A stretch of 64,000 nt of DNA from Convolutriloba macropyga (GCF_964194025.1 NC_134480.1:8866001-8930000), one strand, 5' to 3'; counted from the first letter of the stretch, positions 8,898-58,037 are shown. Translations and numbers: made by a program. Notes: a model not told the origin generated them from the sequence alone.

Positions 8898-9572
8898 CTA
8901 AAACCAATTAATGACTCATTCTTTGAAGGATTCGAATTTTATATTAGCTTAAAACGAATAGATGCTATATAAACTTATAATTACAGATCAACGATAACAA
9001 GCGCTCGCTTCGTGAAATCCGCTTTTGTTTCAAATGTCACCCAATGATGTTGCAAATTTAGGTTACTTGACTCTAATTTCACCGAGAAAATCTGGTATTA
9101 ATCGAGAACTGCGTGGTGATTCGAGATAGCCAGAATTTCAAAGTGACTTTAGCAGAGTCACGTAACCTCGATTGAACGCATTTCGCAACTTCAAAAAAGA
9201 TGGCAGTTTTAATATCTGGTACTGTATAGGGAAATCTGGCAATCTAGAGTCTGGAACTGCAGAGATCTGGACTTTAAAACTTGCAGTGCGTGTTTTAACT
9301 TAACATGCGCTGCACGCGCTTCATAAGCTGATATTTATATGCTTTAAGTAAGGGAAAAGCAATGTTTTTCAAAATCAATGTTTGCTTTGAAATGGTATGT
9401 TTCCGTTTTAGCCGTGAAATACTTTATACGGTTTTTGTCTCTTAAGTGATGGGCTGAACGTTTGCTTTAAATTGATTGATTTAAAAGTTCGCTTTGAAAT
9501 TATTGACCTGAACAATAGCTTTTCGCTGTAAATTTTCGCTGTAGCAATAAATTTTCACTGATTAGAACTCAC

Positions 9573-12461: not shown

Positions 12462-12899
12462 CACCACATTTCAACAAATGTCACGTCATCTGAGAATCTA
12501 AAAACAGGCAAATTAACTCGATATAACCAAGTCTTGCATGACAGGTAAGATGTGATCATTCGTGCTTAATCGGCCTACTGAGACGGCAATAAGATATTAT
12601 CAATGACAAAGTTGGCACAAAGGGTAGCTAGGTGACGGCAGGGGTACAGCCGATGTCCCGCAAAGAACAAATACCCCTAACCCCTCAAAACAAGGTTACA
12701 GTGCTGATGGAGTGCCCATTCCTGATTGAGTGCCCATTCCTGAAGTGGCCCAGTTCGAAATGCCCTGAAACTGCGTAGACTTGCTAGTGCATGTAATGAG
12801 CGACATCACATAGAAGATTTACCGATACCAGACACGAAGACGACAGTTCATAACGTCCTAAACGCCTTATAATTCGGCACTTAAAAGTTGTCTGATACC

Positions 12900-26917: not shown

Positions 26918-27054
26918 CTTGGTTCAACTTCAACAGATTCATCGCACTCGAAAGATGGATTATCAATATGCTCGACCTCATCAGCGGCACCAAAGTTGCC
27001 ATCAAGGTCTTTGGCTTCTTTATACTGAGTAGAAATGAAAATAGGTACAACCAT
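26918..27054 (-). CDS. ITM2/BRICHOS-family protein, first coding exon
   Basis: ATG at 27054, 6 nt after acceptor ccctttcag (ends 27061). MVVPIFISTQYKEAKDLD resembles ITM2B MVKVTFNSALAQKEAKKD. Donor AG|GTGACT at 26917. The five exons sum to 1092 nt (363 aa plus stop). Confidence 0.8.
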
Positions 27055-27343
27055 GTCTATCTGAAAGGGGGAAAATGATACAAAATTCCTCACTAGCTTT
27101 GTTCAGAAAAAAATGTTTAAAAAATTCAAATCATAGAATATGGTGAAACTGGTAAAGAGGGGGTGGGAGGGGGTTTTTCCCATTATAGCCCACCTCCTCC
27201 ATTACGGTATACTAAACAAAACCAATCAAAAACATCGATCGCAGATGGTTGTTATCAATTGCTTTCAATTTAGATTTAAAAAAATTGATCACTTATGGCA
27301 GATTAAGAATTGAAAATGCTTTCGAAGTTGGGAAATTTTCGCG

Positions 27344-30125
27344 AGACAAGATAAAGCGCTTCGCGAGACAAACATATTTGCAATTAGAACACCCGCTGGA
27401 ATCGAATTGTCAGTTTTTGTCAAAGAAATGCTCTCTTAGGGGCAAAGCCATCCAGTCAACGACAAATTCAATGAGATTCGTTTTCTGGTGGATCTGGACA
27501 AGCTTAACCGATCCCCGCGCAATTTCCTGTTGAAAACTGTGCAAAATCGAGTCTTCAACCAAGTGGTATCCCAAAAACGTAAGAGAGAACTACAGACCGC
27601 AGCCTGGTCAACGTAACCGAACACCTCAAGGAGAACAAACTTTTAACTGTGCCGTTTGTCAAAAGGAATGGTTTTTTCGTAACGAAGAAAAGCTATGGAC
27701 AAAATCTCCTGGATGTACGTAATTTTTTGCAGTTTAAAGAATGGAACGTGAGGACGATAATATAACTGTTGAAAAAAAATAAAAAAGCACTTTGTCAGGA
27801 AGCAGACTCGAAATTACAGCACTTATTCGACTATATGGTTAAGCAAACACTCTTTAAGAAAAAAAAATAGATAACCCCACTGAAACCGGTTCCGTCGATT
27901 CATTCCTGGGAGTAGACACCACAACCTACACAAATTTCTTACGCTACTTTTATTGAAGTTACCTGGAGTAAACATTGAAACATCCAAAATTGATGCACAA
28001 AGAAATTGAGCGAATTGTGCTTGATGACGACAAAAAACTAGTCTCATTAGATGTAGAAAGTATATACATAAATGTGCCTTTGCCTTTAACGAAGCGATAG
28101 ATATATTCTAAGGTGCCTCTATTCAAGTGACCACGCTCCAGATATATGAAATATCAACAAAAAACTTCTGTAAAAATTGGTTGGGACGAATGTACTTTTC
28201 AAATGCAACAATAAATGTAACTGCAAATTAGACGGCTTAGCAATGGACGAAATTTTGGTGGCCATATTTCCAAACACTTGGACGAAATCGTTCAGAAATA
28301 GAACGATGGAATAGATTTAAAAGAGGATTGTCAATTCAAAACTTTCTTACGAACGTTTTCGAACTCTGAGTTCATCGCCAGGTTATAAACAATACAAAAA
28401 TCTAAAAAGAAAAGCCAGAAAATAAAATGCAAATCAGTAAAATCAACCATTCAAGGAAATTTAAAACGAACTTTTACATATCTACAATCGTATCTACAAA
28501 CCATTTATATCTGAGTAAAAAAAACATTTTTGACTTGATGTAAGAGATGCATATCGACATGTTTTTTGTTAGAAACCTACATATATTGCTTTAAACTTAC
28601 TTTGGTTTTGTTCAAATTTAAAAATGAAATTTTCGTTTCTTAGCGTGTCTTTCAAGTTGGATTTTTTATCTCAAAACTAAGATTTCAGTGTATATTCTCG
28701 TGTTCGGTATTCTTGTTCGACAAGATAAAGCGCTTCGTGAGACAAACAAATTTGCAATTAGAACACCCGATGGAATCGAATTGTCCGTTTTTGTCAAAGA
28801 AATGCTCTCTTAGGGGCAAAGCCATCCAGTCAACGACAAATTCAATGAGATTCGTTTTCTGGTGGATGTGGAGAAGCTTGTCCGATTCCCGCGCAATTTC
28901 CTGTTGAAAACTGTGCAAAACCGAGTCGTCAACCAAGTGGTATGCCAAAAACGTAAGAGAGAACTACAGACCGCAGCCTGGTCAACGTAACCGAACACCT
29001 CAAGGAGAACAAACTTTTAACTGTGCCGTTTGTCAAAAGGCATGGTTTTTTTCGCAACGAAGAAAAGCTATCGACAAAATCTCCTGGATGTACTTCATTC
29101 TTTGCAGTTTAAAGAATGAAACGTGAGGACGATAATATAACTGTTGAAAAAAAATAAAACGCACTTTGTCAGGAAGCAGACTCGAAATAACAGCACAACT
29201 TGCTCCACTATATGGTTAAGCAAACATTCTTTAAGACAAAAAAAGATACCCCACTGAAACCGGTTCCGTCGATTCATTCCTGGGAGTAGACACCACAACC
29301 TACACAAATTTCTTACGCTACTTTTATTGAAGTTACCTTGAGTAAACGTTGAAACATCCAAAATTGGTGCACAAAGAAATTGAGCGCATTGTGCTTGATG
29401 ACGACAAAAAGATAGTCTCGTTAGATGTAGAAAGTATATACATAATTGTGCCTTTGCCTTTATTGAAGTGATAGATATAGTCTAAGTAGCCACTATTCAA
29501 GTGACCACGCTCCAGATATATGAAATATCAACATAAAACTTTTGTTAAAATTGGTTGAGACGAATGTACTTTTCAAATGCAACAATAATTGTAACTGCAA
29601 ATTAGACGGCTTATCAATGGACAAAATTTTGGTGGCCATATTTGCAAACATTTGGATGAAATCGTTAATGAGTAGACCGATGGAATAGGTTTAAAAGAGG
29701 ATTGCCACATCAAAAGTTTCTTACAAACGTTTTCGAACTCTGAGTTCATCGTCAGGTTATAAACAATACAAAATGCTAAAATAAAAAGCCAGAAAATAAA
29801 ATGCCAATCAGTAAAATCAACCATTCAAGAAAATTTAAAACGAAATTTTACATATCTACAATCGTATCTAAAAAACATTTACATCTGAGTAAAAATACAT
29901 TTTCGACTTGATGTAAGAGATGCATATCAACAAGTTTTTTGTTAAAAAACCGACATATATTGCTTTAAACTTACTTTGGTTTTGTTCAATTGTCAAAGTG
30001 AAATTTTCGTTTCTTAACGTGTCTTTCAAGTTGGAAAAATGAAATTTTCGTTTCTTAACGTGTCTTTCAAGTTGGATTTTTATCTCCAAACTTAGCTTTT
30101 AGTGTCAATTCTCGTGTTTGGTATT
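27344..30125. repeat. Tandem duplication (period 1374 bp) of a plus-strand PLE RT fragment fused to a minus-strand pLTR
   Basis: GACAAGATAAAGCGCTTCG at about 27344 and about 28718. Near-identical ORFs 27436-27624 and 28810-28998. PLE RT echoes (LDVESIYxNVP, DGLAM) on the plus strand. Confidence 0.9.
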
Positions 30126-32677
30126 CGTTGCGCGTGTCAATGGCTGGTTTCAATGTTCTTACATAGAGCAACTCTGGTGTCATTAACTTAGATTGTTGGC
30201 TGCATTGGTCTAATATCTTACACTGGAAAGCTGTTTCATCACCGTTGCAATCTTTTGCATGTACTCCCATCGGTGAGTCCACCCTGGCATGCTCTGCTTG
30301 TTGGTAATATGTCGGCATGTCTGCCCTACAGAGATGGATTTGCACCCATTACAAGTGAGTTCATAAACCACGTGGGATTTGAGATCCTCATCAAAGCTAG
30401 ATTTGAGGCAAGGTAAACAGCTCTTAAGTTTCCGAGTGGTGAAAATCGTCTGTACAGAATGAATTTCTTTCAAATTCTTTAAAAATTCATTAGAGATGTT
30501 GCCTCTGTACTGTAATACAAGTTGTTGTTTCTCAGTATTTTCCTGTTGTTTTACGGCTACACCCGCGTTAGATTTATGTCCTTTTCTTTTTTTTTTCATT
30601 CGCAGCTGCTAATTGTATCCTTGATGATTTTCCCTACGCAATGCCTAGGATATTGACTACGTTCCCAAATTTCTTCATTTTTTGTCAATGACTCATGGAA
30701 CGCTTCGCAATTGCTGGTGGCTCGGAACAGGCGGTGTATTGTTCCCTGTATTATGCTTTTCTTATGTTGTAGGGGTGCACAGCTACGATAGTTCAGAATT
30801 GTTCTAGTATCTGATGGTTTTCGATACAATGTGCAAAAAATGTTCCCCTCCGGTTGTACGTTAATTGAAATTTCCAGAAATGGCAAACTGTTTTTATCAT
30901 CTGTTGTTTCTAATGTAAATTGGAGATTTATTGACCGCATCTAACAGCTCTTTTATGTCGCCTCTAACTGTTCTCACAATATCGTCGACATATCTTAGAA
31001 AAACTTTAGTTTCGGACGAATGGTTAATGTCAGTCTGATCATTTTCACGACAGAATGTGCACATCCATAACTGGTTTTCCATGCTATCATATTCTGTGTT
31101 ACTGATTTGCTGACATTTTGCGTGGAACCATCCATTACAAACTTCACACTCAACACCCCGGGAACGTGCTGTCATACGGTGTTCGCAATTGCGACAAGTG
31201 CTAGATTGTGTGGTGGTTTTACATTTAGGTGTCTGTAATTTTAGTTGTAGCTCCCACGATTTCATCCAAAGGTTTGCCAAAATCACCACCAAGGACGCAC
31301 CCATTGCCAAACCGTCTTTCTGACAGTACCAACTTTCATTGCATTTGAAATGGACGTTGGTGACGGCTAATTCAAACAGACGTTTCATTGTTGTTCTAGG
31401 TATGTCTGCTTTATCGTCCCTATTATGAAGCGATCGCAGGGCACTGTTAACAGCTTCCTTTACGGGAACGTTGGTGTATAAACTTTTTACATCCAATGAT
31501 AGGATTTGTTCGTCTTTTTCAAGGTTTATTTGCTCCAGAGTCTTTCGTGCGTCATTGGTGTTAGTTTTTATGTTTGCTCCTTCAATCTTTTGGAAAAAGG
31601 GTGTTAGAAACTTGTTAAGTTTATGGTAACAACTTCCCGGGATAGAGAGAACAGGTCTCAGAGGGGTTTCTTTTTTGTGTACTTTCGGTAATCGATACAA
31701 CCTTGCCGGTTGCGCACCAGTGGACCTTAAAGCTTCGTAAACCATAACCGGTATCTTTCCTTTTTTTCCTCATCTCCAAAAGTTCTTTGTTTAGTTCTTT
31801 TTCGTTTTTCACTACGATATTATTACAACTCTTTTCAAGTTTTGGAACTGTTCGCCATATAAAAACTCTTTCCAGTTTTTCTTCGTACGTGCTCTTTTTG
31901 ATAACACAAAACCCTACCCCTTGTCAAAAGGAACAGCAATCAGGTCGTTGTCAAGCAGATATTTTTGCACTTTTGCTAATGCTCTATCTAAAGGTGTTTC
32001 TCTGATGTTTTTTGAGTACCATTTTGCTGCCGACTCAATTTCGAACAGTTTTTCACCTCGTACATTGTTCTCACACAGATTTCTTATCAAACTGTCTATG
32101 TCCGCCAAGAAATGCAACTCTTCAACCTTGTCCCTTATTGGATGCTTTGGACCAAAAACGAGCAAGTCCCTGACGAGTCCCGGCAAAATGATATTATTTA
32201 GAACCACTACAGTCTTCTCATTAGATGCTCTTAGCGGCTTGTCTTGCCTTTCAGAAAGTTTGGCAACTTTTCCCTGCAGTCTTCGTTCAGAATTAACTAC
32301 ATGTTGCCAACTGCGTTGCGCAAAACGAAAATTACGGAGGGCAATAGGTGGTTATCTAATTTGTTAAGGAGAATTTTTCGACCAGCAGCTTGCTTTTGGT
32401 CACATTTACGATGCGTGTCAGCTGCTGTGGAAATTTCCGACCTTAGTAATTTTAGTTGAAAACTATGCACCATTTGATCCGAAAAAACATCTGTTTCCGG
32501 AACGCAAAATTTCAAAAAATTCGGTATTATATTGGTGGTAAGGCAATTTTTAAGAAAATTTATTCTGCATCTGCTACTTTCATATTTACACACATTGTTT
32601 TCATAGTCCAAGTATGGCTTCCAACAGTCTCTTTTTAGCAAAATTTTTCTCAACAAACATCTTGGCAGTTTAACCAT
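30067..32677 (-). pseudogene. PLE ORF2: RT with in-frame PHD finger, thumb, GIY-YIG endonuclease (frameshifted)
   Basis: LPKVHK..PLRPV, SLDVKSLYTNVP, GLAMGASL, PHD, RYVDD, LPFLEI, YRKPS, VVYELTCNGCKSISVGQTCRHI, ELLYVRTLKPAID. Split over ORFs 32297-32731, 31914-32207, 30897-31745, 30596-30940, 30210-30599 and 30067-30345. Confidence 0.92.
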
Positions 32678-32731
32678 AGTTGAAGGTTTGTAAAAGACCT
32701 CCGGTGAGCGAACACCAAGAGATGCTATCAC

Positions 32732-33329
32732 TTACCACTGAGAATTCGCTTTTTCTTTGCCTCTCGTTGATTTTTGCTAAGTTTCCTTTTCCCCCTGTTC
32801 TTTTTAAGCAGTTTCCGTAGATTAGATTGATATTTCAACACTAACCCCAGTAATTTAAACTCAATGTCGGGGTCCTAATGTAGTTGGAAGTATCTGCTGA
32901 TGATGTTCGTGTTCTTTTGCTTCCGTCCTGACACCAAATGCTTCGTTGACTGGATCACTAAAATTCCTAACAGCTGTTTTAAAATGTTTTTACCGCCATA
33001 CTTTTGACAGCAAACCATCGCCTTGTTTCTATCCGAATGACGTTGTAAAAAGGCAACCAACTTCTCTACATCACACGGCCTGTTGTCATCTGTTCGTTAG
33101 TGAGGGTGATGGAGTTCTTCAAGGCGTCGTACCAAATCACGAAATCACTGCGGTCTTTCAGTTGACCCTTGTGCCAGACCTTTCTTATGTTGTTTTCGGC
33201 GTTTCTGGAGTTTGGGTTGAACGAAAGACCCGGAATGGCGGTCACCGGCGGGAGTAACAATTTTGGATGTTTGCTGTTTTTAGGTTTTAATGCATGGAAA
33301 AATGAACTTGCCGCCAGAATATGCACCAT
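32732..33329 (-). pseudogene. PLE-associated upstream ORF1 (about 198 codons), SGNH-like pattern with basic tail
   Basis: ATG at 33329. ORFs 33066-33329 and 32875-33060 join across a frameshift and continue past an internal TAG to TAA at 32732. Lies between the 5' pLTR and ORF2. Confidence 0.6.
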
Positions 33330-33437
33330 TCTTCAATCTGTAATTGTTCCATGTTGATCTAGCTGAAATGACATAGAAAACTCAACTTGCCCCTTCCTGG
33401 GCTTTGGCTTGTTAAATTGACAGATTTGATCAAGATT

Positions 33438-33803
33438 TGAAAGAGGATTGTCAATTCAAAACTTTCCTAGGAACGTTATCAAACTCTGAGTTCATTGTCA
33501 GGTTATAAACAATACAAAATGCTAAAATGAAAAGCCAGAAAATAAAATGCAAATCACTAAAATCAATCAGTAAAGTAAATTTAAAAGGAATTTTTACAAA
33601 TCTGCAATCGTATCTACAAAACATTTACATCTGAGTAAAAATACATTTTCGACTTGATGTAGCAGATGCAGATCGACATATTTTTTGCTAAAAAAACCTA
33701 CATATATTGCTTTAAACTTACTTTGGTTTTGGTCAATTGTAAAGTTGAAATTTTCGTTTCTTAACATGTCTTTCAAATTGGATTTTTATCCCCAAACTAA
33801 GCT
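33438..33803 (-). repeat. 5' pseudo-LTR of the PLE (other copies at about 28316-28715 and 29692-30100)
   Basis: Shared strings AAGAGGATTG, CTCTGAGTTCAT, CAGGTTATAAACAATACAAAA and GCTTTAAACTTACTTTGGTTTTG occur in all three copies. Confidence 0.88.
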
Positions 33804-33804
33804 G

Positions 33805-36800
33805 TCATCCGATGGAAGAAAGTTGTATTCCTGAACCAGGTGAAGTGCCAGAATATAGGCAACCAAGAAAACAAAACAATGGGGATCTTGTAAGGTTCTG
33901 CAGTCACTGCAACAAATTACCCAAAACTGAACTCACGTTAGTGGGAAGGAATAAGCGTGATGCTACCTCTACAATTCTAAACTTTCGTAGATATGCCGCA
34001 TTGCAACATTAGAAAAAAATTAGTTCAGGGGACTGTGTATAGGTTTTTCTGTTGCACGACAAATTGTAAATGTTTTGAAAAAGCTTAATGCAAATCAAGA
34101 ATGTTTGAAAAATCAGAAACTTGAAATTCGACTGCATATTGTACACAAAACCATGGAAACACTCGTGGTAGGGAAACGAAAAGCCTCAAACACAAAGAAA
34201 AAGAGATAAACAATTGTCAAAAAATAGTTGAGAACAAAACACCACTTATATTTTGCCTTACAGATGCAGTTAAGTGTGATACAGAAAAAAAACCAGAGAA
34301 GTTATCTTAGTTTAAATTTAATTTTTAAACTAAGATAACTTCTCTGGTTTTTGAAACTCGACTGCATATTTTACACAAAACTATGGAAACACTCGTGGTA
34401 GGGAAACAAAAAGCCTCAAACACAAAGAAAAAAAGATAAGCGATTGTCAAAAAATAGTTGAGAACAAAACACCACTTATATTTTGCATTACAGATGCAGT
34501 TAAGTGTGATACAGAAAAAAAACCAGAGAAGTTATCTTAGTTTAAATTTAATATCTGAATAGTAAAATGAAAACATGCTTGCGTTCGCTTAAGTCGAGTT
34601 TCGACAATAACCTGAAATCTCACTTAGTTTATGAATTTCGTATAGTTCATGTGAATCCACCTATGTCGGCGAAACCTGCCGTCACGTTATCACGAGGGTA
34701 ATTGAAAATCAGGGAAATGACTCACCGGTGGGGCAGCACGTTAGCGACTGCTGTGGTTCGTCAAAGTTGTTAAATGGCGAATCATTGAACTCTGCAGCGA
34801 CATTAGAAAATTGATCTCATCGGAAGCATTGTACATAAAGCAACAAAAACCGAAATTGAACACGCGGGACAAACATCGTGGGCGGTAGATGACGCTCAAT
34901 TATTAGTCTGACATGTTAATTGGCTTGTTCAAAAGGTTTTAACGAACACTATATGCAAACAAGCATAAATCACACAACTGTCAACAAACAAAACCTAAAA
35001 TCTCAGAAAAGAATGAAAATAAACGACATTTTTCGAAAATTGAAAATCTAAGATTTCTGAAAGTTCAAAAAAACGATGTAAACAAGTCATCAATTTCCAG
35101 AACCTAAAACTTTAATTTTGTAATGATTGTTGAGATAGTTACATTTTGGTTTAAACAATCTTTGAGTAAAATTGATATCCTGAAAAGGCTAGTTTTGGCA
35201 AAAACGTTCGTTTTAAATTTGGAATTGGACTATCTGTTCTTCAATTTATTTTAAAATCAAATGGGTTATTATTCTCTAAATCGACAAAACAGTGAGCACC
35301 CACTATGAAAGATGACAGCAGCGTTTTTAAATTTCCCACAACCACTTTCTGTATTTTGAACTTAGAGCAATATGCTATACTCTAGGAGCCTTTTGGAACG
35401 ATTGAAATATAACTATGCTGATTGGATGTCTAGCCTTCCTTCCGTGTACAGCACCACATGTATTATCACTCTTAGTTACAAGTTTGATACCTTGTAAGCC
35501 GTTAGAGGGAAGGAACTTTGCTCAATATGTTGATAATATTGTGTTTACCACAAAGTCAAAAGATAAAGATTTGCTCAAAAAATTTAACGCATTGCAGATT
35601 ACAAAAAACTTACAAATTACATTAGAAAGTCAAGCTGATAACGGCGAACTGGCTCCTCTTGATTTGAACATATGTGAAGGCAAGGAAAAATATTTTCATG
35701 CAAATGATACGATAAGCGTGATGCTACCTCTACAATTCTAAACTTTCGTAGATATGCCGCATTGCAACATAAGACAAAAATTAGTACAAGGGACTGTGTA
35801 TAGGTTTTTCCGTTGCACGACAAATTGTAAATGTTTTGACAAAGCACTTAATGCAAATCAAGAATGTTTGAAAAAACAGAAACTTGAAATTCGACTGCAA
35901 ATTGTACACAAAACTATGGAAACACTCGTGGTAGGGAAACAAAAGGCCTCAAACTTAAAGAAAAATGATAAACAATTGTCAAAAAATATTTGAGAACAAA
36001 ACCCCAATATTATTTTGCATTACAGATGCAACTTAAGTGTGATACCGAAAGAAAAACCACAGAAGTTATCTTGGTTTAAATTTAATTTTCTGAATAGTAA
36101 AATGAAAACTTGCTTGCGTTCGCTTAAGTCGAGTTTCGATAAAAACCTGAAATCGCACTTAGTTTATGAAATTTCTTGTAGTTCATGTGAATCCACCTAT
36201 GTCGGCGAAACCTGCCGTCACGTTATCACGAGGGTAACAGAAAATCAGAGAGATGACTCACCGGTGGGGCAGCACAATAGCGACTGCTGTGGTTCGTCAG
36301 GGTTGTTAATTGGCGAATCATTGAACTCTGCAGCGAAATTAGAAAATTGATCTCATTGGAAGCATTGTACATAAAGCAACGAAAACCGGAATTAAACACG
36401 CGCCACAAATATCGTGGGCGGTAGATTACGCTCAATTATTAGTCTGACATGTGAGTTGGCTTGTTCAAAAGTTTTAAACAAACAATATATGCAAAAAAGA
36501 AAAAATCACACAACTGTCAGAAAACAGTCCCTAAAATCTCAGAAAAGAGGGAAAATAAACGACAATTTTCGAAAATTGAAAATCTAAGATATTTGAAAAT
36601 TCAAAAAAACGACGTCAACATGTGGTCAATTTCCAGAACCTAAAAAACTTAATTTTTGTATTGATTGTTGACATAGTTACATTTTGGTTTAAAATAATCT
36701 TAGAGTAAAATTGATATCCTGAAAAGGCTAGTTTTAGCAAAAACATTCGTTTTAAATTTGGAATTGGACTATGTGTTCTTCAATTCATTTTAAAATCAAA

Positions 36801-39800
36801 TGGGTTATCATTCTTTAAATCAACAAAACAGTGAGCATCCACTATGAAAGATGACGGCAATGTTTTTAAATTTTCCGCGACCACTTACTGTATTTTGAAA
36901 TTAGAGCAATATGCTATGCTCTAGGAGCCACGTGGAACGATTGAAATATAACTAAGCTGATTGGATGTCTAGCCTTCCTTCCGTGTACAGCACCACATGT
37001 ATTATCACTCTTAGTTCAAAAAATTGAGCTGCGTTGTAGTACGAAACTCATCCCCCCAAATATATGTTTTTAGCGTATCTTTTGTCTTTTCGTTCATACT
37101 TGATCGTCTGATCTGCTTAAAGAACATTTTATGTATTGTCTTTAATCAAAGTCAGATACTGATTGGGTTTTCAATAGGAGTTAGACTCTAGTCCAGAATA
37201 AGATGAGTCATCATATCGATCGGGCATAGGATCAATTATTTTGACGAATAGTGCACCTACTTACGATCTTATTTTAATAAAATAGAAATCCAATATGGGG
37301 ATATACAATACGCGAAAATAAATCCAAAAACTGGCTAAAATTTTAAAAGTGATCGTTGGGCATCAAAGTAGGGATAAAATGTGCGTATAAAAGTAACGAA
37401 TTTGAAGACTGACCTACTAATTGTGCTACTGCAATTGTCAACTTAATGCAGAAATATAAAAAGCTACAACTAGAAAAATAGATCACAAGTTTTTCATTCC
37501 TTAACATTTATCAACATACACGAGGCTTTTGAAAACTGCTTAAAAATCTGCCGGAACTGCAACATTAGAAAAGAATTAATACAAGGGACTGTGCATAGGT
37601 TTTTCCGTTGCACGACAAATTCGAAATGCTTTGACAAAGCACTTCATACAAATCAGGAATGTTTGAAAAATCAGAAACTTGAAATTCGACTGCAAATTGC
37701 ACACAAATCTAGGGAAACACTCGTTGTAGGGAAACAGAAGGAATCAAACACCAAGAAAAAAGTTACACCATTTTCAAAAAAACGTTGAGATCAAAACCCC
37801 ACTTTTATATTGCATTACAGATGCAACTTAAGTGTGAGACTGAAAGAAAAGCTACAGAAGTTATCTTGGTTTAATTTTAATTTTCTGACAAGTAAAATGA
37901 AAACTTGCTTGCGTTCGCTTATGTCGAGTTTCAACAAAAACCAGAAATCTCACTTAGTTTATGAAATTTCTTGCAGTTCATGTGAATCCACCTATGTCGG
38001 CGAAACTTGCCGTCACGTTATCACGAGGGAAACAGAAAATCAGAGAAATTGATCACAGGTCGGGCAGCACTTTAGCGACTGCTGTGGTTCGTCAAAGTTG
38101 TTAGTTGGCAAATCTTTGAACTCCGCAGTGGCCTTAGAAAACGGATCTCATTGGAAGCATTGTACATAAGGCAACGAAAACGAAATTAAACACGCGCGAC
38201 AAACATCGTGGGCGGTAGATGACGCTCAATTATTAGTCTGACATGTTAATTGGCTTGTTCAAAAGGTTTTAACGAACACTATATGCAAAAAAGCATAAAT
38301 CACACAACTGTCAATAAACAAAACCTAAAATCTCAGAAAAGAATGAAAATAAACGACATTTTTCGAAAATTGAAAATCTAAGATTTCTGAAAGTTCAAAA
38401 AAACGATGTAAGCAAGTGATCAATTTCCAGAACCCAAAATATTTGATTTTAGTAATGATTATTGACATAGTTACATTTTGGTTTAAAACAATCTTAGAGT
38501 AAAATTGATAACCTGAAAAGCCTAGTTTTAGCAAAAACGTTCGTTTTAAATTTGGAACTAGACTATCTGTTCTTCAATTTATTTTAAAATCAAGTGGGTT
38601 ATCATCCTCTAAATCGACAACACAGTGAGCCCCACTATGAAAGATGACAGCAGCGTTTTTAAATTTCCCGCAACCACTTATTGTATTTTGAACTTAGAGC
38701 AATATGCTATACTCTAGGAGCCACGTGGAACGATTGAAATATAACTAAGCTGATAGGATGTCTAGCCTTCCTCCCGTGTACAGCACACCATATATTATCA
38801 CATTTAGTTCAAAAAATTGAGCTGCGTTGTAGTAGGAAACTCATCTCCCCAAATATATGTTTTAGCCTATCTTTTGTCTTTCCGTTCATACTTGCTTGTC
38901 TGATCTGCTTAAAGAACATTTCATGGATTGTTTTTAATCAAAGTCAGATACTGATTGGGTTGTCAATACGAGTTAGACTCCAGTCTAGAATAATTCGAGT
39001 CATCATATTGATCGGGCATAGGATCAATGATTTTGACGAATAGTGCACCTACTTAAGATCTTATTTTATTAAAATAGAAATCATAAGGGATATACAATAC
39101 GCGAAAATAAATCCAAACATTAGCTCAGATGTTAAAAGTGATCGTTGGGTTTCAAAGTAGGGGTAAAAGATACGTATAAAAGTAAAGAACTTGAAGACTG
39201 ACCTACTAAGTGTGCTACTGCAATTGTCAACTTAATACAGAAATATGAAAAGCTACAAATAGAAAAATAGATCACAAGTTTTTCATTCATTAACATTTAT
39301 CAACATACACGAGGCTTTTGAAACTGTCTAAAAATCTGCCGGATCTGCAACATTAGAAAAGAACTAATACAAGGGACTGTGCATAGGTTTTTCCTTTGCA
39401 CGACAAATTCGAAATGCTTTGACAAAGCACTTCATACAAATCAGGAATGTTTGAAAAATCAGAAACTTGAAATTCGACTGCAAATTGTACACAAATCTAT
39501 GGAAGCACTCGTTGTAGGGAAACAGAAAGTCTCAAACCCCAAGAAAAAAGTTACATCATTGTCAAAAAAACGTTGAGAACAGAACCCCACTTTTATATTG
39601 CATTACAGATGCAACTTAAGTGTGAGACTGAAAGAAAAACTACAGAAGTTTACTTGGTTTAAACTTAATTTTCTGACTAGTAAAATGAAAACTTGCTTGC
39701 GTTCGTTTAAGTCGAGTTTGGATAAAAACCTGAAATGGCACTTAGTTTATGAAATTTCTTGTAGTTCAAGTGAACCCACTTATGTCGGCGAAAATTGCCG

Positions 39801-42800
39801 TCACGTTATCACGAGGGTAACAGAAAATCAGAGAAATGATTCACCGGTCGGGCAGCACGTTAGCGACTGCTGTGGGTCGTCAAAGTTGTTGTTTGGCGAA
39901 TCATTGAAGTCTGCAGCGACATTAGAAAATTGATCGCATTGGAAGCATTGTACATAAGGCAACGAAAACCGAAATTAAACACGCGCGACAAATATCGTGG
40001 GCGGTAGATGACGCTCAATTATTAGTCTGACATGTGAGTTGGCTTGTTCAAAAGTTTTTAACAAACAATATATGCAAAAAAAAGTCACACAACTGTCAGA
40101 AATTAAAACCTAAAATCTCAGAAAAGAAGGCAAATAAACGACAATTTTCGAAAATTGAAAATCTAAGATTTTTTGGAAGTTCAAAAAACTATGTAAACAA
40201 GTGATCAATTTCCAGAACCCATAATATTTAATTTTTGTAGTGGTTGTTGACATAGTTACATCTTGTTTTAAAACAATCTTAGAGTAAAATTGATAACCTG
40301 AAAAGGCTAGTTTTAGCAAAAACGTTCGTTTTAAATTTGGAATTGGACAATCTGTTCTTCAATTTATTTTAAAATCAAATGGGTTATCATCCTCTAAATC
40401 GACAAAACAGTGAGCCCCACTATGAAAGATGACACCAGCTTTTTTAAATTTCCCGCAACCACTTATTGTATTTTGAACTTAGAGCAATATGCTATACTCT
40501 AGGAGCCACGTGGAACGATTGAAATATAACTAAGCTGATTGGATGTCTAGCATTCCTTCCGTGTACAGCACCACATGTATTATCACTCTTAGTTCAAAAA
40601 ATTGAGCTGTGTTGTAGTACCAAACTCATCTCCCCAAATATATGTTTTAGCGTATCTTTTGTCTTTTTGTTCAAACTTGATTGTCTGATCTGCTTAAAGA
40701 ACATTTCATGGATTGTCTTTAATCAAAGTCAGATACTGATTGGGTGTTCAATACGAGTTAGACTCCAGTCCAGGATAAGGTGAGTCATCATATTGATCGG
40801 GCATAGGATCAATGATTTTGACGAATAGTGCACCTACTTAAGATCTTATTTTATTAAAATAGAAATCATAAGGGATATACAATACGCGAAAATAAATCCA
40901 AACATTAGCTCAGATGTTAAAAGTGATCGTTGGGTTTCAAAGTAGGGGTAAAAGATACGTATAAAAGTAAAGAACTTGAAGACTGACCTACTAAGTGTGC
41001 TACTGCAATTGTCAACTTAATACAGAAATATGAAAAGCTACAAATAGAAAAATAGATCACAAGTTTTTCATTCATTAACATTTATCAACATACACGAGGC
41101 TTTTGAAACTGTCTAAAAATCTGCCGGATCTGCAACATTAGAAAAGAACTAATACAAGGGACTGTGCATAGGTTTTTCCTTTGCACGACAAATTCGAAAT
41201 GCTTTGACAAAGCACTTCATACAAATCAGGAATGTTTGAAAAATCAGAAACTTGAAATTCGACTGCAAATTGTACACAAATCTATGGAAGCACTCGTTGT
41301 AGGGAAACAGAAAGTCTCAAACCCCAAGAAAAAAGTTACATCATTGTCAAAAAAACGTTGAGAACAGAACCCCACTTTTATATTGCATTACAGATGCAAC
41401 TTAAGTGTGAGACTGAAAGAAAAACTACAGAAGTTTACTTGGTTTAAACTTAATTTTCTGACTAGTGAAATGAAAACTTGCTTGCGTTCGTTTAAGTCGA
41501 GTTTGGATAAAAAACTGAAATGGCACTTAGTTTATGAAATTTCTTGTAGTTCAACTGAACCCACTTATGTCGGCGAAAATTGCCGTCACGTTATCACGAG
41601 GGTAACAGAAAATCAGAGAAATGATTCACCGGTCGGGCAGCACGTTAGCGACTGCTGTGGGTCGTCAAAGTTGTTGTTTGGCGAATCATTGAAGTCTGCA
41701 GCGACATTAGAAAATTGATCGCATTGGAAGCATTGTACATAAGGCAACGAAAACCGAAATTAAACACGCGCGACAAATATCGTGGGCGGTAGATGACGCT
41801 CAATTATTAGTCTGACATGTGAGTTGGCTTGTTCAAAAGTTTTTAACAAACAATATATGCAAAAAAAAGTCACACAACTGTCAGAAATTAAAACCTAAAA
41901 TCTCAGAAAAGAAGGCAAATAAACGACAATTTTCGAAAATTGAAAATCTAAGATTTTTTGGAAGTTCAAAAAACTATGTAAACAAGTGATCAATTTCCAG
42001 AACCCATAATATTTAATTTTTGTAGTGGTTGTTGACATAGTTACATCTTGTTTTAAAACAATCTTAGAGTAAAATTGATAACCTGAAAAGGCTAGTTTTA
42101 GCAAAAACGTTCGTTTTAAATTTGGAATTGGACAATCTGTTCTTCAATTTATTTTAAAATCAAATGGGTTATCATCCTCTAAATCGACAAAACAGTGAGC
42201 CCCACTATGAAAGATGACACCAGCTTTTTTAAATTTCCCGCAACCACTTATTGTATTTTGAACTTAGAGCAATATGCTATACTCTAGGAGCCACGTGGAA
42301 CGATTGAAATATAACTAAGCTGATTGGATGTCTAGCATTCCTTCCGTGTACAGCACCACATGTATTATCACTCTTAGTTCAAAAAATTGAGTTGCGTTGT
42401 AGTACCAAACTCATCTCCCCAAATATATGTTTTAGCGTATCTTTTGTCTTTTTGTTCAAACTTGATTGTCTGATCTGCTTAAAGAACATTTCATGGATTG
42501 TCTTTAATCAAAGTCAGATACTGATTGGGTGTTCAATACGAGTTAGACTCCAGTCCAGGATAAGGTGAGTCATCATATTGATCGGGCATAGGATCAATGA
42601 TTTTGACGAATAGTGCACCTACTTAAGATCTTTTTTTAATAAAATAGAAATCATAAGGGATATACAATACGCGAAAATAAATCCAAACATTGGCTCAGAT
42701 TTTAAAAGTGATCGTTGGGTTTCAAAGTAAGGGTAAAAGGTACGTATAAAAGTAACGAACTTGAAGACTGACCTACTATGTGTGCTACTGCAATTGTCAA

Positions 42801-42916
42801 CTTAATACAGAAATATAAAAGCTACAAATAGAAAAATGGATCACAAGTTTTTCATTCATTAACATTTATCAACATACAGGAGGCTTTTGAAAACTGTCTA
42901 AAAAACTGCCGGATCT
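33805..42916 (+). repeat. Five-unit tandem array (about 1.79 kb) of decayed PLE 3' halves (thumb, GIY-YIG, downstream region)
   Basis: Recurrent HLVYEISCSSCESTYVGETCRHVITR at about 34620, 36160, 37950, 39740 and 41525. ORF offsets 37591 to 39379 (1788) and 39379 to 41164 (1785). Confidence 0.93.
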
Positions 42917-42919
42917 GGG

Positions 42920-45400
42920 TTCGCTGCTTACATCGTTGAATATTTTGCAGAGATCTCTGTGAAAATATTTGATGAATGATCCAGCAGCTCTCTGGAGCTC
43001 AAAAGCTATGGACCGGAACATTTAGCCTTTTTCAGCAACTTCTCTATGTTTTGCTTTTAGTTCTTTAGACTGTTCGGCTGCTGTGACCGTATTGACAACC
43101 TATGCACTCCGAAGGTTAGCAAGGCAAGCCAGTTCACTACCGTAATATCACTCAAAATCTGCTTATTTTTCTTGCATCCTTCAAATGGAAAGCCCAACGG
43201 CACTCTTGTTGTCTATTCTGTAGAGATGACTCGGTGCTAGCTTTAAGGCAATGCAAAAAGAATTCAGGGTCTGCTTAATCGAATGGCTAAAGTTAGAGTG
43301 GCGAGGGCATCTCCGTTCTTGACTGGGACACGAATGACCCTGCCAATAGTCTGACTTCATCCCTTCGAAACATACGCAGTTGTGATGTTCACAGACGTTG
43401 GCTCCCAGGCGCAAACCCCTTGGATCTCTTAGTTGTTGATTCGACAGATTCAGATTCCGTTCTCTACCATTTTTCTCAGCTAGAATTGAAACTGCAGTCA
43501 ACAACTTGCTCACCAAAGTAGTTAACAGGAGTCCTGTGAGTGCCCACTGCTGGAGGTAAAGAAGCGCGAGAACAGCAAGCATTTGTGCTGATGAGACACC
43601 AATTCAACCAAATGAGGAGAGCAAGATTGATTTCGTCAGTGGCCGGGAGGGCAGACCAACTGTTGGCAAAACTCATTATACTTTTGAAGACATCGTGATT
43701 GTTGGTGATTAGCGGTTCTGAGAAACCAGGCGAGGGAAAATTCTTATCCCATCGCTTTAGGTGCTTTTCCAAGAGCTTCTCAGAGCTGCTTGTACTAAAT
43801 GGGTGAAACATGTTGTCAGCTCAAAACAACCAGAGAACCAGCTCACATGTAGCCCTTTTCAATTTTTGCTGAAAGTTTTTAACGCATTGTTCAACATAAC
43901 TGATATTGTTATGGGTATTAAATCAACACAGGGGGACAGTGATCTTATTAACTCTGTTCTTCTGACTTCTGACTAGTTTATTTGTTTTGTAATTGTTGAT
44001 TCGATATTTTCAGGTTTTTCTTGTTGTATTTACTTTCTGTAACCACTGAGAATTTAACTTGCCTTGGAAGCTATTAAAACGTTTGACTCCAATGGACAAA
44101 ATTTGAATATGAGATCACCAGTGAGTTTCTCGTAAACTCGCTTCGACCAATTTGTTTGATGTTTAGTCTCAGGTGCCTCCTTAAACTGTGTCTTCTCATA
44201 CGAGCTCTCTAAACCAGAATATAATGCTCGGTCCAGTGAGCGCCCGCTGAGGAAGCTTAAAAAAAGGAAACAGCAATTTTTGCGCGAATAAGACACCAAG
44301 TCAACCCCTTGAAGAGAGCAAGACTGACTAGAGAAACTGATTGTTAGCAACATATACATTTTTTACCCCGCTTAAATCTAATTTTGAAATACCATCGTAT
44401 TTCTCTTGTAAATCTAGATCCAAGAAAAACTGACCTGTTATAAAAAATTAGAGCAATTTCGGCGTACTGCAACAATTTCGGAAGAGAGAAAAACCAAAGA
44501 GCGCATCCAGTTTATAAAGAATTTCTGTAAAATTTTCCAGATTTTCGGGTTATTCTGAGAGCAGAGAAAGCCACATGTTGTTTCGAATTGGGGCTTATAA
44601 AATTACAAGATCCTCGTTGGTTGTAACTTTTATTCCGGGCCATAATTTTGCACATTAATTAAGTATGTTAACTTAGTGGTTCTTTGAGACTGAGTCGGTT
44701 CTCCCAAGAAACTCAAATCACATTTTCCAAAGTCAGGACTCAAGCCGAGTTCCCTCTCAAAACATAAAAATTTGTCGTACATTTTTTAGTAAAATTCTGT
44801 AGTAATCTGCAAGATTGCCATCGTCCAAGTAATATGTGTTGAGTTTTGATTTCATTTGATTGACGAAAATTTGTATTGTCTGGACAAATGTCGGTGGAAA
44901 AGGGAGGTGCTTCCTTGTCCCCCTGTTGACTCTTTTCTCACGACGACATAATATTACCTCCATAATATAGGCAATTCGGTTGACTATAGGCGGTGTGTGT
45001 ATAGATTTAAAAAATGGTCTAGACTTTGCGTAGACGTTTAGGCACAGGAGTTGATGAAGTTTCTTTAAAATCTAGTTTAAGTGAAACATCAGTTTTGAGG
45101 AAAGTGATGCCAGCATATGTTTGGGAAAAAATGAGCGTTTGAAGACATCGTGCTTGTTTGTGATAAACGGTTCTGAGAAACCAGGAGAGGGAACAAATTT
45201 ATTCGACCGCTTTGGGTTCCTATCCAAATTGCTTGTGTTTTATGTGTCATATTGGTCGCAAAAACTCAAGCGAACGCCGGCTGATATGTTGCCCTATTCA
45301 AGCTTTGCTGAAATCATTTTAGCGCGTTGTTCAATATCATTGATATTGTTATTGGTGTTGTATTAACACCGGAGGATGATGACCTTTTTAGCTCTATTCC
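42920..45400 (-). mobile_element. CRE-like (RLE) non-LTR retrotransposon relic, internally rearranged
   Basis: YYLDDGNLAD in ORF 44757-44963. QQLRDPRGLRLGANVCEHHNCVC...HSC...RHS...HLYRIDNK zinc/RLE region in ORF 43181-43582. Segment at about 43680-43960 is repeated at about 45137-45400. Confidence 0.75.
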
Positions 45401-52156: not shown

Positions 52157-55100
52157 ATGCCAAACAAGTCCAAAGCATCATCAGCAGCAAAGAACAGCCT
52201 AAAGCAACAACTTCAGATGAAAGTGATAGAGTGGAACGCAGTAAAAGACCTCTTCGAAGAACAAAGCAATAGTAACGAAGGTCTAAGCATACTACGTCAA
52301 ATTTGCGAAGTCTTGAGGTCTCTAAAAAAGCAGTTAGACAGAAGTTGTAGTGAACTCTTGAAGCTACAGCTGACAAGTGAAGAGTTGACAACACTTGCTA
52401 ATGAATCTGCCGAAAGAAACATAACCATGCTGAAATGCAAACAGAGAGCAAAGCACACAGAACAGATGCAAGTGACACTGAATCTGTTTTTAACACATCA
52501 GCAGAGCCTTCACCTAATCTATTGAGAAAACAGAACCCTTTACGCAATAGAGCAATGAAACATCATTTCGCAAGCCGCAACAATCAGGAAAGTAACAACT
52601 CTGACTCGTCCGACTCCGAAGATCCTGATAATTCTCAGCCCGTTCTGAACATTGAACAGAGAGGAAGAAACCGGTAATTTCTCACGGGGGCACTGAGAAC
52701 AGATGAACGATCGAGAGAAGAGAACAATGTTCAAGGGCAGAGCCGACATGAGAGTGAAGACAGCAGAGCAGGGCATTTGCAACAACAATGTTCTTTTCAC
52801 AACAATAACCAGGCTGCTCCAACCATGAGCCATAGGTACACACCGCAAACCAATCAACTACCAGTGAACAATTTCAGCGGACCTGATGGACACAATAACA
52901 ACGGCTATAACAACAACCTATACAATGGCTTTCCGAGTTTCCCACCAGACTGGATGCAACACCAAGAACTGATGATACAGAACACATTGAGTTTGCCTAA
53001 GATTTCAATTGACAATTTCACTGGTGATCCTCTAAAATGGCATCAGTGGTTCAGTTTCTTCAAAGCAACCATTCACAACAACAGTGGCCTCTCAGACGCC
53101 CAAAAACTGACATACCTCCAAAACTCAGTAACTCATAAAGCAAGAGATTCCATAAGTGGATACTCCTACAATGGGGATTACTACGATGAAGCCATAGCTG
53201 AATTGACCAGATAGTTTGGCAAACCACAGCATATTGTCGCTGCATACCTGGATCAATTAGAGAAGTGGCCAAAACCCAGATTAGACGAACCAAACTCTTT
53301 TGTGAGCTTCTCATCTTTCTTGAGGAGACTTGTACAAACCTTCCGACTCCACAACTTTGAAGCTGATCTGAAGTCTTCAGCTGTCTTGAGAATGGCCAGA
53401 GACAAATTGAACCCTAACATGATAATCAGATGGAATCAACACACAAGAAGCCAAGGCTTGCTGCAACCTAATCTTACCCATTTTGCTGATTGTGTTGACT
53501 CATACGCAGAGGCGTGCGAAGACATCTCCCCACAACGGAACCAGAGAACCAGAGTGAACAATTTTTCTAGGAGGGGGCCTTCAGATGTTTCATGGCAACT
53601 CTGCTCACAAAACCTTGGTCGTTGTCCCGAATACTTTGAAAAGTCAGTTTATGACCGACAGGGTTGTTTGAGGAGGTTCAATCTCTGCCCTAACTGTCTA
53701 AGAGCTCACGAAAAGGGTCTCTGCCAATCGAAAACAAGGTGCCTTGTGGACAGATGCAATGGCTTCCATCACTCAACGCTCTATAGGACAGATGCAAGGC
53801 AACAGCAACAAAATGCGCAACCAATTGAGAACTGGAATCAAAACTCACAAAACAATGTCTTCAGAAACCAAACAAACCAAAGCCAGTCAAGCTATGGACG
53901 TAACTTTAATAATGAAAAGCAAAGGCAGCAGATGGGTTCAAATTACAACCAACAGAGTGGAAACCAGAACATGCAAAGTGGATCTAACAGCAGCACTTCA
54001 CACAGGGGCAACTGGAACGAAAGCGGTTTTCACCCTCAGCCGATGAACGCACAGAACAACGTCAGCAGACAGCAGGGTAACAATAAACCTACTGTAGTCC
54101 AACAGCAGGCAATTACACCGCAACAAAACTACACTTGCAGCAACCAACAGGAAACTTCGTGGATCAGACCGCAGATACAATTGCAAGCGATACCAGTAAC
54201 ACTTTTCAACAGAGATCTTAGCATCGAAACCTCCGCCTTGTTGGACAGTGTCAGTGACAACACTCAAATAACACAGAAGGTTGCTGATGCACTTCAAGTT
54301 CAACAACCGAAAGACATAACCCTACCACTAGCTTCACTTCACGGTGAACACTCAGTTAAAACTGCAGATGTCATGATCGGCATAGCAGCTGTTCGGCATA
54401 GTGCAGCAGTTGTTCTGTGATCAGAATCCCTGTGTACGCAACAACAATGGAGAGTTTCGAATGCCAAGAGTTCAAATTGAAATGTTGAATGAGATCTGCA
54501 GAGACCATTCTCACCTAAGATTTCCAGCAATCAGAGACAACCGGATCGGAATTCTGATTGCAGCAGATGCATTCACAGCAACAGTTCCCAGACAGTTCAC
54601 AACAGGACCCACTGGCACCCCATACGGAGTCAACACTCTGCTTGGCTGGACACTGACAGGGCCCATTCCTCAGAGGTACACACAGAAGAGGGTCGGACAG
54701 TCAAACAGCACAAGCATAACACTTTTCAATCATATCAGGAGACGACAACACGATCCAGATGAAGATCATCTCCAACTCTTCTGGACAATTGAAGGAATGA
54801 ACTTCAATCAGTGCTCTTCAAAGGGACAGTCTTCAGATGACAAAGAAGCTCTGTCCATCCTCAATGATACCATAAAACACTTTGGTCACAGATACCAGAT
54901 TGGACTTCCATATGAGAAAGACATCAAACTTCCTAACAACTGCTTCAAGGCAAAAGTTCTGTGGCACGCTCTGCAGCAGAGACTGGAGAGGGACACAAAT
55001 TTCAGAGAACGCCACGAGGAAACCATCAAAAAAGATTTGGATAAAAACTACATCACAACTGCAGACCCCAGTTGCAGACACTCTGTCTGGTACCTTCCCC

Positions 55101-57975
55101 ATCACCCAGTGATCAACAAACAGAAACCAGATAAAATCCGCAGAGTCACAAATGCTGCTTCCAAATATGAGGGTACCTCACTCAATGATGCACTGCTGAC
55201 AGGGACGGATCTATTCTGCAACCTGCATGGCCTTCTTCTCCGCTTCAGACAGTACTCAGTGGCAATCACAGCTGACATTGAGGCAATGTTCATGCAGATT
55301 GGCATCCAACCACAAGCCCAGGACTATCGTTTTCTGTGGACACAGAATGGCATTGAAAATATCTTCAAATACAATCGACTCATTTTTGGAGCCACATGCT
55401 CACCTTCTTGTGCGATTTTTGTTCTGCAGAAGTGTGCAAATGACCACAAACAAGAACATCCAGAGGCCCACACATCAATCATGCAGCAGTTCTACATGGA
55501 TGATTTCATGCAGACCTAACCTTCTGAAGAGGAGGCCCGCAGAAGTGCAGATGAGATCAAAACTGTTTTGCATACAGGAGGATTCAATCTGACAAAGTTC
55601 TTGAGCAACAGACCAGCCGCATTAGATAACTTACTGGAAGAAGACAAGGCGGATATGAAAACCCAAAGAATCCTTGGTCAGACATGGGACCCCAAAACTG
55701 ACAAGTTGATGTTTGCAAAACCGAAGCTTCATTACACAGGACAACAGATGACTCAAAGAAAGGTGCCTTCAATGGCAGCTTCTCTGTTCGATCCAGTCGG
55801 ACTGATTTCACCTTTTGCCATCAGAATAAAATGCATTCTCCAAAGAATCATTAAAGAGGGAAGAAACTGGGATCAACCTGTGTCGGAACGCTACCAACAG
55901 GAACTACAGGAGTGGATGGATGAGTTCGACAGCATGACTTCAATCGAAATTCCTAGATGGTTGATTCCCAGCACCAATGGATCTCATCAACTTCACACGT
56001 TCACTGAAGCCTCAATGAGTGCAATTGTTGCCACAGTTTATGTGAGGACAACCAAAGCCGATGGATCTTCCACATCCCGATATGTGATCAGTAAAACAAT
56101 AGTGGCGCCAATCAAGCAGCTGAGCATTCCAAAACTGGAATTGGAAGCGGCAACACTTGGAGGATAAGTTCAAAACACTTTTGGGCAGACAGCACCGCTA
56201 CACTTGGATGGATCCAATCCAAGCAGAGACAGAAGTTGTATATTGCCAACAGATTGACCAAATTTCACGAGAATTCCAGCCCGGACAATTGGAGACGAAT
56301 TCTGGAAAGATGAATCCCGCTGACCACGGCACACGAGACCTCAACTCATCAGAAATACCAAAGCTCTAACTTCAACCACCGGACTCTCTGAGCACACCTC
56401 AAGACTCCTGGATTTTTGCCGAAGACTGTGATCGCCACATATTCGCTGCACAAGCGACACAACTTCAGACGCCAGCCGTTGTGGTTGAAAAATTTTCAAC
56501 ATGGAGTCGACTACTCAACTCTACTAGAATGGTGTTCCAGGCAATAAAACGCTTCAAGGCAAAAGTCCGAACTAGATGACAAAACGAATCACCTGAGACC
56601 TCCAACAATGACATTTTAGCATCAGATGAGAAAAGGGCAGGGAACTACTTCATTAAAATGTCCCAAAACAATTTCTGCACTGTTGAAGGGAGACGATCTT
56701 GGGAAAGGAGACAAGCTGATGCCCTTCACACCCTTTCTAGATGACGATGGACTCTTGAGGGTAGGAGGAAGACTCAACAAGGCACCTCTAGCCTACAGTG
56801 CGAAATATCCTCTTGTTCTCCATAGCAGGAGCAAAATTGCAAGACTGTTGATTGAAAAGGCGCACCATGACTCTGGCCATCAGGTCGTGACGCATGTGAA
56901 GGCTCACCTGCAACAAACTTTCCTGATGATTGGATTGAGAAAAGTTCTGCGAAGTCTGGGGAAATACTGTTTCATTTGCAGACGATGGAGGGCAGACAAT
57001 GTGAGACCGAAGATGGCCGATCTTCCTGAATTCAGATTTCCAGATGCAAACAAGCAGTACCCCCTCGTCAACACAGGAATGGACATGTTTGGACCATTCT
57101 ACATTGAGCAGAAGAGAGAGGGCACCCAGATGCAATACGTGTGCTTGTTCACATGCCTGGTCACCAGAGCTGTCCACCTAGAAGTATGCCATGACCTCTC
57201 AACCGATTGTCTTCTCATGACCATCCGCAGATTTGTATCTCGACGTGGATACCCTGATCAGATTGTGAGTGACAATGGCAAAAACTTCATTGGAGCCAAC
57301 CAAGCAATGAGGTTTAAGTTCCAGAGAAGCTACAAGCCAGACAACGAGTACATCAGACTGCAATTGGCTCAACAGAACATTCAGTGGACTTTCAACCCTC
57401 CATTGGCACCACACTTCGGAGGAGTCTGGGAGAGGCTGATACAGACCGCGAAGAGGAGTCTACTAATAGTGCTGGGCAGTCAGAAACTAACACTTTCAGT
57501 TTTCCAGACAGTTGTGGCAGAGGCCGAGGCAACTTTGAACTCAGGACCATTAACTCATGTGGGCTGCAGCATCTCAGATGAGGGACCACTTACTCCGAAT
57601 CACTTTCTCATTCGCAGACCTCACATGTGTTTGAAACCTCTTGTGAACAGCAACCAGCGGTTCTCCACTAAGGATTTCAAGTTGACGCAGACACTACTTG
57701 ATCACTACTGGAGCAGGTTGCTGAAGGAATATATTCCTGTGCTCAACAAGAGAACGAAGTGGCAAAGGTCAAATGATGAGCTGGATGAAGGTGACATTGT
57801 GTGGGTGCTCAAGGACTTCACACCCAGAGGCATCTGGCCTCTAGGGAAGATTGTGAAAGCACAAAGAGGTTCAGACGGAATAGCCAGGAGCTTCGACATG
57901 CAGACATCTACAGGAATGGTACAGAGACCAAGTCTTGTATTCTCACAATTGTCAGGTGTGCAGGAGGGTCAATGA
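52157..57975 (+). pseudogene. Disrupted gag-pol polyprotein of the second BEL/Pao element
   Basis: ORFs 52112-52525, 52435-52677, 52777-53214, 53302-54420, 54401-55519, 55568-56167 and 56626-57975 appear in canonical domain order. Confidence 0.9.
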
Positions 57976-57988
57976 AACAAGTTCATTG

Positions 57989-57989
<1 letters not shown>

Positions 57990-58037
<48 letters not shown>

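Follow-up and report, generated by a model that had tools for sequence, protein, structure and literature searches.

Organization of the locus

The window analysed here is a stretch of 64,000 nucleotides of the Convolutriloba macropyga genome (NC_134480.1:8866001-8930000), which is largely a transposon graveyard. BEL/Pao-type LTR fragments (Peptidase_A17, RVT_1 with FYMDD, integrase, DUF5641), together with a LINE-like RT fragment with YADD, account for 1-4400, 53300-58000 and 62656. On the minus strand, 9555-12467 is an uninterrupted ORF of 970 amino acids for a PLK4-like kinase (Pkinase 242 bits, Plk4 polo-box 1 and 2); this single-exon PLK4 homologue may represent either a retrogene or a gene without introns.

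The segment 27000-44000 was mapped by blastn onto full-length references of the PLE families designated A (intact 885-aa ORFs, L032 and L033), B (many intact 869-aa ORFs, e.g. L061; 62% to A over RT plus PHD), C (L063; 52% to A over RT plus PHD), and D, for which only degraded copies and no intact ORF were found in this genome. On the plus strand, 27218-28311 is the N-terminal RT part of a family D PLE (motif B at 28225-28290), recognized by translation and by blastn matches of 67-71% to the D copies L064 and L065. Its tandem duplicate, 28719-29685, is a D segment that spans the RT from roughly the DKG region up to motif B and was identified by the same two means. Between the two, 28313-28712 on the minus strand is a duplicated family A 3' end (87% to positions 3133-3531 of L032). 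The whole tandem duplication covers 27218-30087 with a period of about 1.37 kb; it contains the junction between the D RT N-terminal part and the A 3' end, and postdates the nested insertion described below. The motif B that belongs to the D copy under study is KLDGLSMDKILVAIFANIWMKS at 29599-29664.

The minus-strand segment 29687-33234 is a full-length, frameshifted family A PLE, 89% identical to positions 1-3531 of L032, which holds an intact 885-aa family A ORF. Pfam detected RVT_1 and, immediately before RYVDDIV, a PHD of 24.4 bits (cut-off 24), the PHD of this element being located at about 31050-31196. Upstream of the full A copy, a 5'-truncated A copy is located at 33437-33807 on the same strand (86% to 3158-3528 of L032), giving the partial-tandem (pLTR-like) arrangement that is typical of PLEs.

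Family D sequence on the plus strand continues from 33808, first as the fragment described below and then as an array of five head-to-tail units (33951-42904), every one of which codes for a thumb-like region and a GIY-YIG endonuclease. Unit 1 (33951-35477) includes the D thumb, the GIY-YIG endonuclease and the 3' region; unit 2 (35478-37545) is extended at its 5' side to RT motifs C-E, with FAQYVDNIV at 35517-35543; and units 3-5 (37546-42904) are each about 1.79 kb long. The GIY-YIG of the D units reads HLVYEISCSSCESTYVGETCRH (36156-36221 in unit 2), and the endonuclease aligns to residues 756-837 of family B at 43-61%; a Pfam search of the window D ORFs 35415-35738, 35754-35990 and 36015-36347 gave nothing significant. 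Identity reaches 99% between units 4 and 5 and is 84-89% between units 1 and 4. Such graded identity fits unequal crossing-over, namely the birth of a satellite from a PLE tail, rather than repeated insertion. Unit 1 also contains a 230-bp tandem duplication at 34121-34552 (1.9 copies, 96% identity) and a near-perfect palindrome of 65 nt at 34288-34352; the palindrome gave weak miRNA-like Rfam hits, far below threshold.

A PHD remnant at 33808-33952

The first-pass annotation, made from the sequence of the window, had read two plus-strand peptides separated by a 1-nt shift as the remnant of a PHD finger. Both peptides are present, VKCQNIGNQENKTMG at 33840-33884 and DLVRFCSHCNKLPKTELTLVGRN at 33884-33952, in frames offset by one base. 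The proposed alignment to the C-terminus of the minus-strand PHD (HAKCQQ...WMCTFC, 31050-31124) was reproduced without gap over 25 residues, with 9/25 identities and a BLOSUM62 score of 49, as high a score being obtained in 0 of 200,000 shuffles. Among all six-frame 16-mers of the window, the fragment is the top non-self match to the minus-strand PHD peptide. It had also been noticed that the stretch following the peptide recurs in the next array unit; indeed the 16-mer CGTTAGTGGGAAGGAA (33936-33951) reappears with one mismatch as CGTTAGAGGGAAGGAA at 35500-35515, and leads there directly into FAQYVDNIV.

Neither the Pfam search of the window fragment itself nor tblastn of the family B PHD region against it (E<=0.1) produced a hit; the fragment is frameshifted and too short for either. 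As it keeps only three of the eight zinc ligands and has no Pfam hit, its identity as PHD rests on the sister copies elsewhere in the genome. The segment 33808-33950 was compared with the window's own assembly of 1.18 Gb. At least 40 places match at 74-82% nucleotide identity, with E values down to 1e-19, and the better-preserved copies encode motif B, the linker, a complete C4HC3 PHD and then RYVDD. In these D copies, motif B reads QVDGLAMGASLAV.LANIWMKS, the linker ...ESC.PEPGLKKDPSEK, followed by CPDCSRKLVWNSKGVECERCGNWFHAKCQKISNEEYKIMGDIVWFCSHC and then by NKLPKTE.KLERRFFARYVDDIV; the order in the sister copies is motif B, linker, CPDCSRK...VECERCGNWFHAKCQKISNEEYKIMGDIVWFCSHC and RFFARYVDDIV. 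One could suppose that anonymous decayed DNA merely happens to resemble the end of a PHD, given that the identities are just 9/25, a frameshift must be assumed and Pfam is silent on the fragment; the shuffling result and the full PHD encoded in the at least 40 copies make such a coincidence practically negligible.

The Pfam model PF00628 (gathering threshold 24) detected the finger in the D copies L011 (30.4 bits) and L002 (25.4 bits), as well as in the sister families B (26.8 bits) and C (24.0 bits), and in the intact A copy L032 it reached 22.6 bits, just under the threshold. Over 29 D copies, Cys or His is the majority residue at all eight ligand positions, while every single copy is decayed, and a C4HC3 pattern with canonical spacing is found in D as a family and in the intact ORFs of A, B and C. 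Since no intact D ORF was found, the ancestral state of D is read from decayed copies. In the D ancestor the finger was located in the loop that joins RT motif B (RT4) to the catalytic YVDD (RT5).

These matches bear on two further explanations. The fragment might be an exon of a host PHD-finger gene lying beside transposons, as the nearest solved relatives of the finger are host chromatin proteins such as KMT2C, MLL1 and PHF2. The matches, however, are PLE copies with motif B and motif C: every sister copy is flanked, in order and in frame, by these two motifs, and the sequence is repeated at least 40 times, so that a host exon is hardly credible. The fragment might otherwise be a rearranged, inverted or gene-converted piece of the neighbouring family A element, as it adjoins A sequence (33437-33807), and inverted or tandem composites are common among PLEs. 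Against this, blastn of 33808-33950 matches D only (78-81%) and no A, and the window D copy falls within the D clade (100/100), apart from A; together with the target duplication described below, which marks A as inserted into D, this leaves an origin from A very improbable. The fragment thus belongs to a second, diverged PLE family, as the first-pass annotation had claimed. D and A share about 49-54% protein identity in the RT, and their DNA similarity is patchy (64-74%). Over the N-terminal part of the RT, the nearest intact relatives of D are family B (55% identity) and family A (51%).

Decay of the family D copy

The remnant is composed of three pieces. The first, 33808-33839, is the family D linker that follows motif B, with EESCIPEPG at 33815-33841. 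The second, 33840-33935, is the C-terminal half of the D PHD (ligands 6-8, KC...FCSHC) with the spacer to motif C, as indicated by the alignment to the genomic copies and by the ligand tally. The third, 33936-33951, contains the last codons preceding motif C, LVGRN. In a pairwise alignment to the D copy L064, about 101 nt are absent at 33839|33840, which removes PHD ligands 1-5. One G is gone from the run at 33881-33884, the 1-nt shift being read as a lost G because most sister copies have five G in this run. At 33951 homology resumes at the equivalent of 35712, and the first unit therefore is without the 196 nt encoding RT motifs C-E. The frames 1, 2, 1 of the fragment are explained by the losses of 101 nt and of 1 nt. 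The Q that opens the 'QVKCQ' of the first-pass annotation is a frame artefact of the deletion junction 33839|33840 and does not represent a substituted histidine. MAFFT placed the window linker wrongly, and pairwise local alignment assigned it to the motif B-PHD linker, followed by the deletion.

With only the last three ligands (6-8) retained and the conserved Trp before ligand 7 replaced by Arg, the window sequence is a remnant and not a finger. The segment 33808-33952 is a non-functional relic, formed by the linker and the C-terminal PHD half of a long-dead family D PLE.

Insertion of a family A element into the family D copy

The octamer CGATGGAA is present at both 29678-29685, the end of the D RT segment, and 33810-33817, within the D linker, and thus brackets the entire A insertion. 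The D homology ends at 29666-29685 and restarts at about 33808-33811; on the coordinates of the family, the second half of D begins where the first one stops, with no sequence lost between them. The fragment continues a D copy of nearly full length and is not a short 5' stub; that it might be the 5' end of a truncated copy was ruled out by the upstream D-family RT and the target duplication. Family A was inserted in the motif B-PHD linker of D, in the opposite orientation and as a partial tandem, with an 8-bp target duplication. The two elements that had been compared in the first-pass annotation are, accordingly, physically nested, A within D.

The A copy is 89% identical to the intact A ORF and the window D copy only 71-81% identical to its nearest kin, which is consistent with A being the younger of the two. 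The best-supported history of this copy is as follows. A younger family A PLE landed in the D linker, inverted and as a partial tandem, thereby generating the 8-bp target duplication. The D copy was then shortened by about 101 nt in the first half of its PHD, by one G, and by the 196 nt of motifs C-E. The 3' part of D (thumb, endonuclease and 3' region) was amplified into the five-unit array of about 1.79 kb per unit, probably by unequal crossing-over.

Probable single origin and vertical descent of the PHD within RT

An exhaustive phmmer search with the family B ORF against 1.84 billion representative sequences returned 21,140 PLE-like proteins. Among the best 150 of these 21,140, the alignments of full-length relatives are split into two blocks at the position of the insert, and the GxAMG-RYVDD spacing is 27-40 aa in typical PLEs as opposed to 95-112 aa, with 5-9 Cys, in the PHD-bearing proteins. 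PHD-bearing proteins were found in four other public assemblies, ERZ908123 (a Tara Oceans marine metagenome contig), ERZ25878734, ERZ25074608 and ERZ17095083.

Maximum-likelihood trees of the RT were constructed after removal of the insert columns; these trees are unrooted, with outgroups taken from one phmmer list, and for the trees only, broken D copies were translated across their breaks, with X at these positions. All 20 PHD rows, which represent families A-D and the four other assemblies, form one clade, supported by an SH-aLRT of 98 in the 79-row tree and by UFBoot 100 and SH-aLRT 97 in the 42-row tree, where a single change is required in 200 of 200 bootstrap trees. This clade lies within a wider set of PLEs without PHD, with the PHD-less P0017 as its sister (99/99). 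Within it, the window D copy belongs to the D clade as mentioned above, D is the sister of B plus C (99/97), and A lies outside D, B and C. The first-pass annotation had suggested placing both of its families on a PLE RT tree, and A and D are both included in the single PHD clade.

In the earlier-branching PHD PLEs, from other assemblies (P0011, P0012, P0013, P0019, P0022 and P0048), the finger ends with W-x-C-G-C (C-x-C) and not with W-x-C-x2-C, and the linker is longer as well; the geometry of the ligands thus varies inside the one clade.

The PHD has diverged together with the RT. Between A and D, the identity is 43-47% in the PHD and 49-54% in the RT flanks, and between B and D 53% and 51-57%, respectively. 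In nearly all pairs the PHD identity follows that of the RT flanks at a slightly lower level, with no sign of a recent domain swap. The monophyly of the PHD rows on an insert-free tree, combined with this co-divergence, argues that the design predates the split of A and D. The PHD might alternatively have been captured independently by different PLE families, or swapped laterally between them by, for example, template switching. RTs do switch templates, and transposons have gained PHDs repeatedly, including the Chlamys PLEs at two other positions (PMC8557442). The insertion point is nevertheless the same in these families, which share the motif NWFH.KCQ.IS..EY, the tree calls for one change in 100% of the bootstrap replicates, and the PHD identity is never well above the flank identity in between-family pairs; independent capture or swapping is accordingly an improbable account. 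What fits best, on the sequences compared, is one gain of the PHD, by the ancestor of a subclade of C-terminal GIY-YIG PLEs that includes A, B, C, D and their relatives, with transmission by vertical descent thereafter. The earlier proposal of a clade feature, as opposed to a one-off capture, agrees with this result. An age of the design greater than that of the wider radiation represented in the other public assemblies is likewise supported.

The reading of the locus as a whole, which joins a family D relic, the history of this copy (nesting, deletions and array) and a single gain of the PHD followed by vertical descent, is given a probability of about 0.9. The D relic is independent evidence of the clade-ancestral design, and the family with which it was compared sits nested within the same relic. 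What the locus adds is a second, extinct family, the nesting of A in D, the single-origin tree and the co-divergence of PHD and RT.

Predicted fold and possible function of the finger

An AF2 model of the family B RT, PHD and thumb was obtained with a pLDDT of 87.4 (74-94 in the insert). The modelled insert is compact and PHD-like, with two short strands and helices. Searched with Foldseek, the whole model matched RT folds of a generic kind only, namely those of group II intron RT and TERT. The nearest solved PHDs found by phmmer are those of KMT2C, MLL1 PHD3, PHF2, BPTF, Pygo2 and TAF3, with E values from 8e-5 to 8e-3. Most of these fingers recognize H3K4 in its methylated or unmodified form, and in H3K4-reader PHDs the binding cage includes the Trp of the C-x2-C-x-N-W-F-H block.

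From this family resemblance, histone binding by the PLE finger is inferred. In active members its most likely role would be to read the histone H3 tail and thereby hold the RNP of RT and endonuclease at chromatin while target-primed reverse transcription proceeds. That the finger ties the RNP to a particular chromatin state in this process has, by analogy with the known readers, a chance somewhat short of even. Its retention across RTs that now share about 40-50% identity argues that the finger is needed for propagation. More tentative still is the broadest proposal, that the PHD PLEs may constitute an old, monophyletic and undescribed subclade of animal PLEs with C-terminal EN, spread over several (probably marine) host lineages, with an H3K4-type reader in the palm loop that steers target-primed reverse transcription; taken in its entirety, we regard it as possible and rather doubtful. 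If true, it would be the first chromatin reader inside the polymerase core of a retroelement, kept through deep family divergence. The many intact 869-aa and 885-aa ORFs of the sister families make target choice of PLEs by chromatin reading testable.

Comparison with known systems

The elements share several features with canonical PLEs that carry a C-terminal EN, namely Penelope/Poseidon (Arkhipova 2006; PMC8557442). They have one long ORF, in which the RT (DKG, motifs 1-7, thumb) is followed by GIY-YIG. The DKG motif is VPFDKG in the intact A and B ORFs, VPNDKG in the D copy L065, and a decayed VPFVKRHG in the window D copy (29023-29052); Pfam RVT_1 matches families A and B, and PF01541 (GIY-YIG) is matched at 25.6-28.6 bits by the intact ORFs of B and A. 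As in Penelope/Poseidon PLEs, two Cys are located between GIY and YIG (CCHH), and the CX2-5CxxC linker finger is absent. Its absence upstream of GIY-YIG, seen when the ORFs were inspected, suggests the Penelope/Poseidon type, which the elements resemble by the criteria of PMC8557442 (C-terminal GIY-YIG, CCHH and no such linker) as applied to these ORF features. Partial-tandem (pLTR-like), inverted and nested arrangements and many 5'-truncated copies are also in common with this type, and the window contains a truncated A ahead of a full A, a five-unit D array, and A nested inverted in D. The elements differ from canonical PLEs in the interval between motif B and RYVDD, which holds the PHD and is 95-112 aa long instead of 27-40 aa, and in the lack of a hammerhead ribozyme detectable by Rfam. 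None was found at the gathering threshold in the whole window and none at E<=1 in 27000-43000, though decayed or minimal hammerheads could escape the models.

In the literature searched, PHD insertions in PLEs are reported for the Chlamys elements of Chlamydomonas only, where the PHD sits either in the RT, between RT2a and RT3(A), or within the endonuclease (Craig et al. 2021, PMC8557442). In both systems the PHD lies in frame within the PLE polyprotein. The Chlamys elements, however, reside in green-algal hosts and have an N-terminal EN, whereas the elements described here are in an animal genome, have a C-terminal EN, and carry the PHD between RT4(B) and RT5(C). The difference in PHD position, host and EN end points to separate acquisitions.

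With the H3K4-methyl readers, the PLE finger shares the C4HC3 spacing, the W in C-x2-C-x-N-W-F-H, and the W two residues ahead of ligand 7. The other aromatic-cage positions vary by PLE family, being Y/F in B and C, W in D, and T/A in A. The finger differs from these readers in that it is located in the palm loop of a polymerase and not in a chromatin protein.

Chromoviral integrases carry a chromodomain. CR1-like LINEs carry a PHD, as Kapitonov and Jurka (2003) are cited for this in PMC8557442. The PLEs resemble both in that a histone-reader module is coupled to the integration machinery, a link that presumably serves the choice of target. Retrotransposons usually carry their accessory domains at the termini, and the modules of chromoviruses and CR1-like elements are terminal appendages of the integrase or of ORF2; in the PLEs described here, in contrast, the reader module is a folded domain that interrupts the catalytic core of the RT, between motifs B and C.
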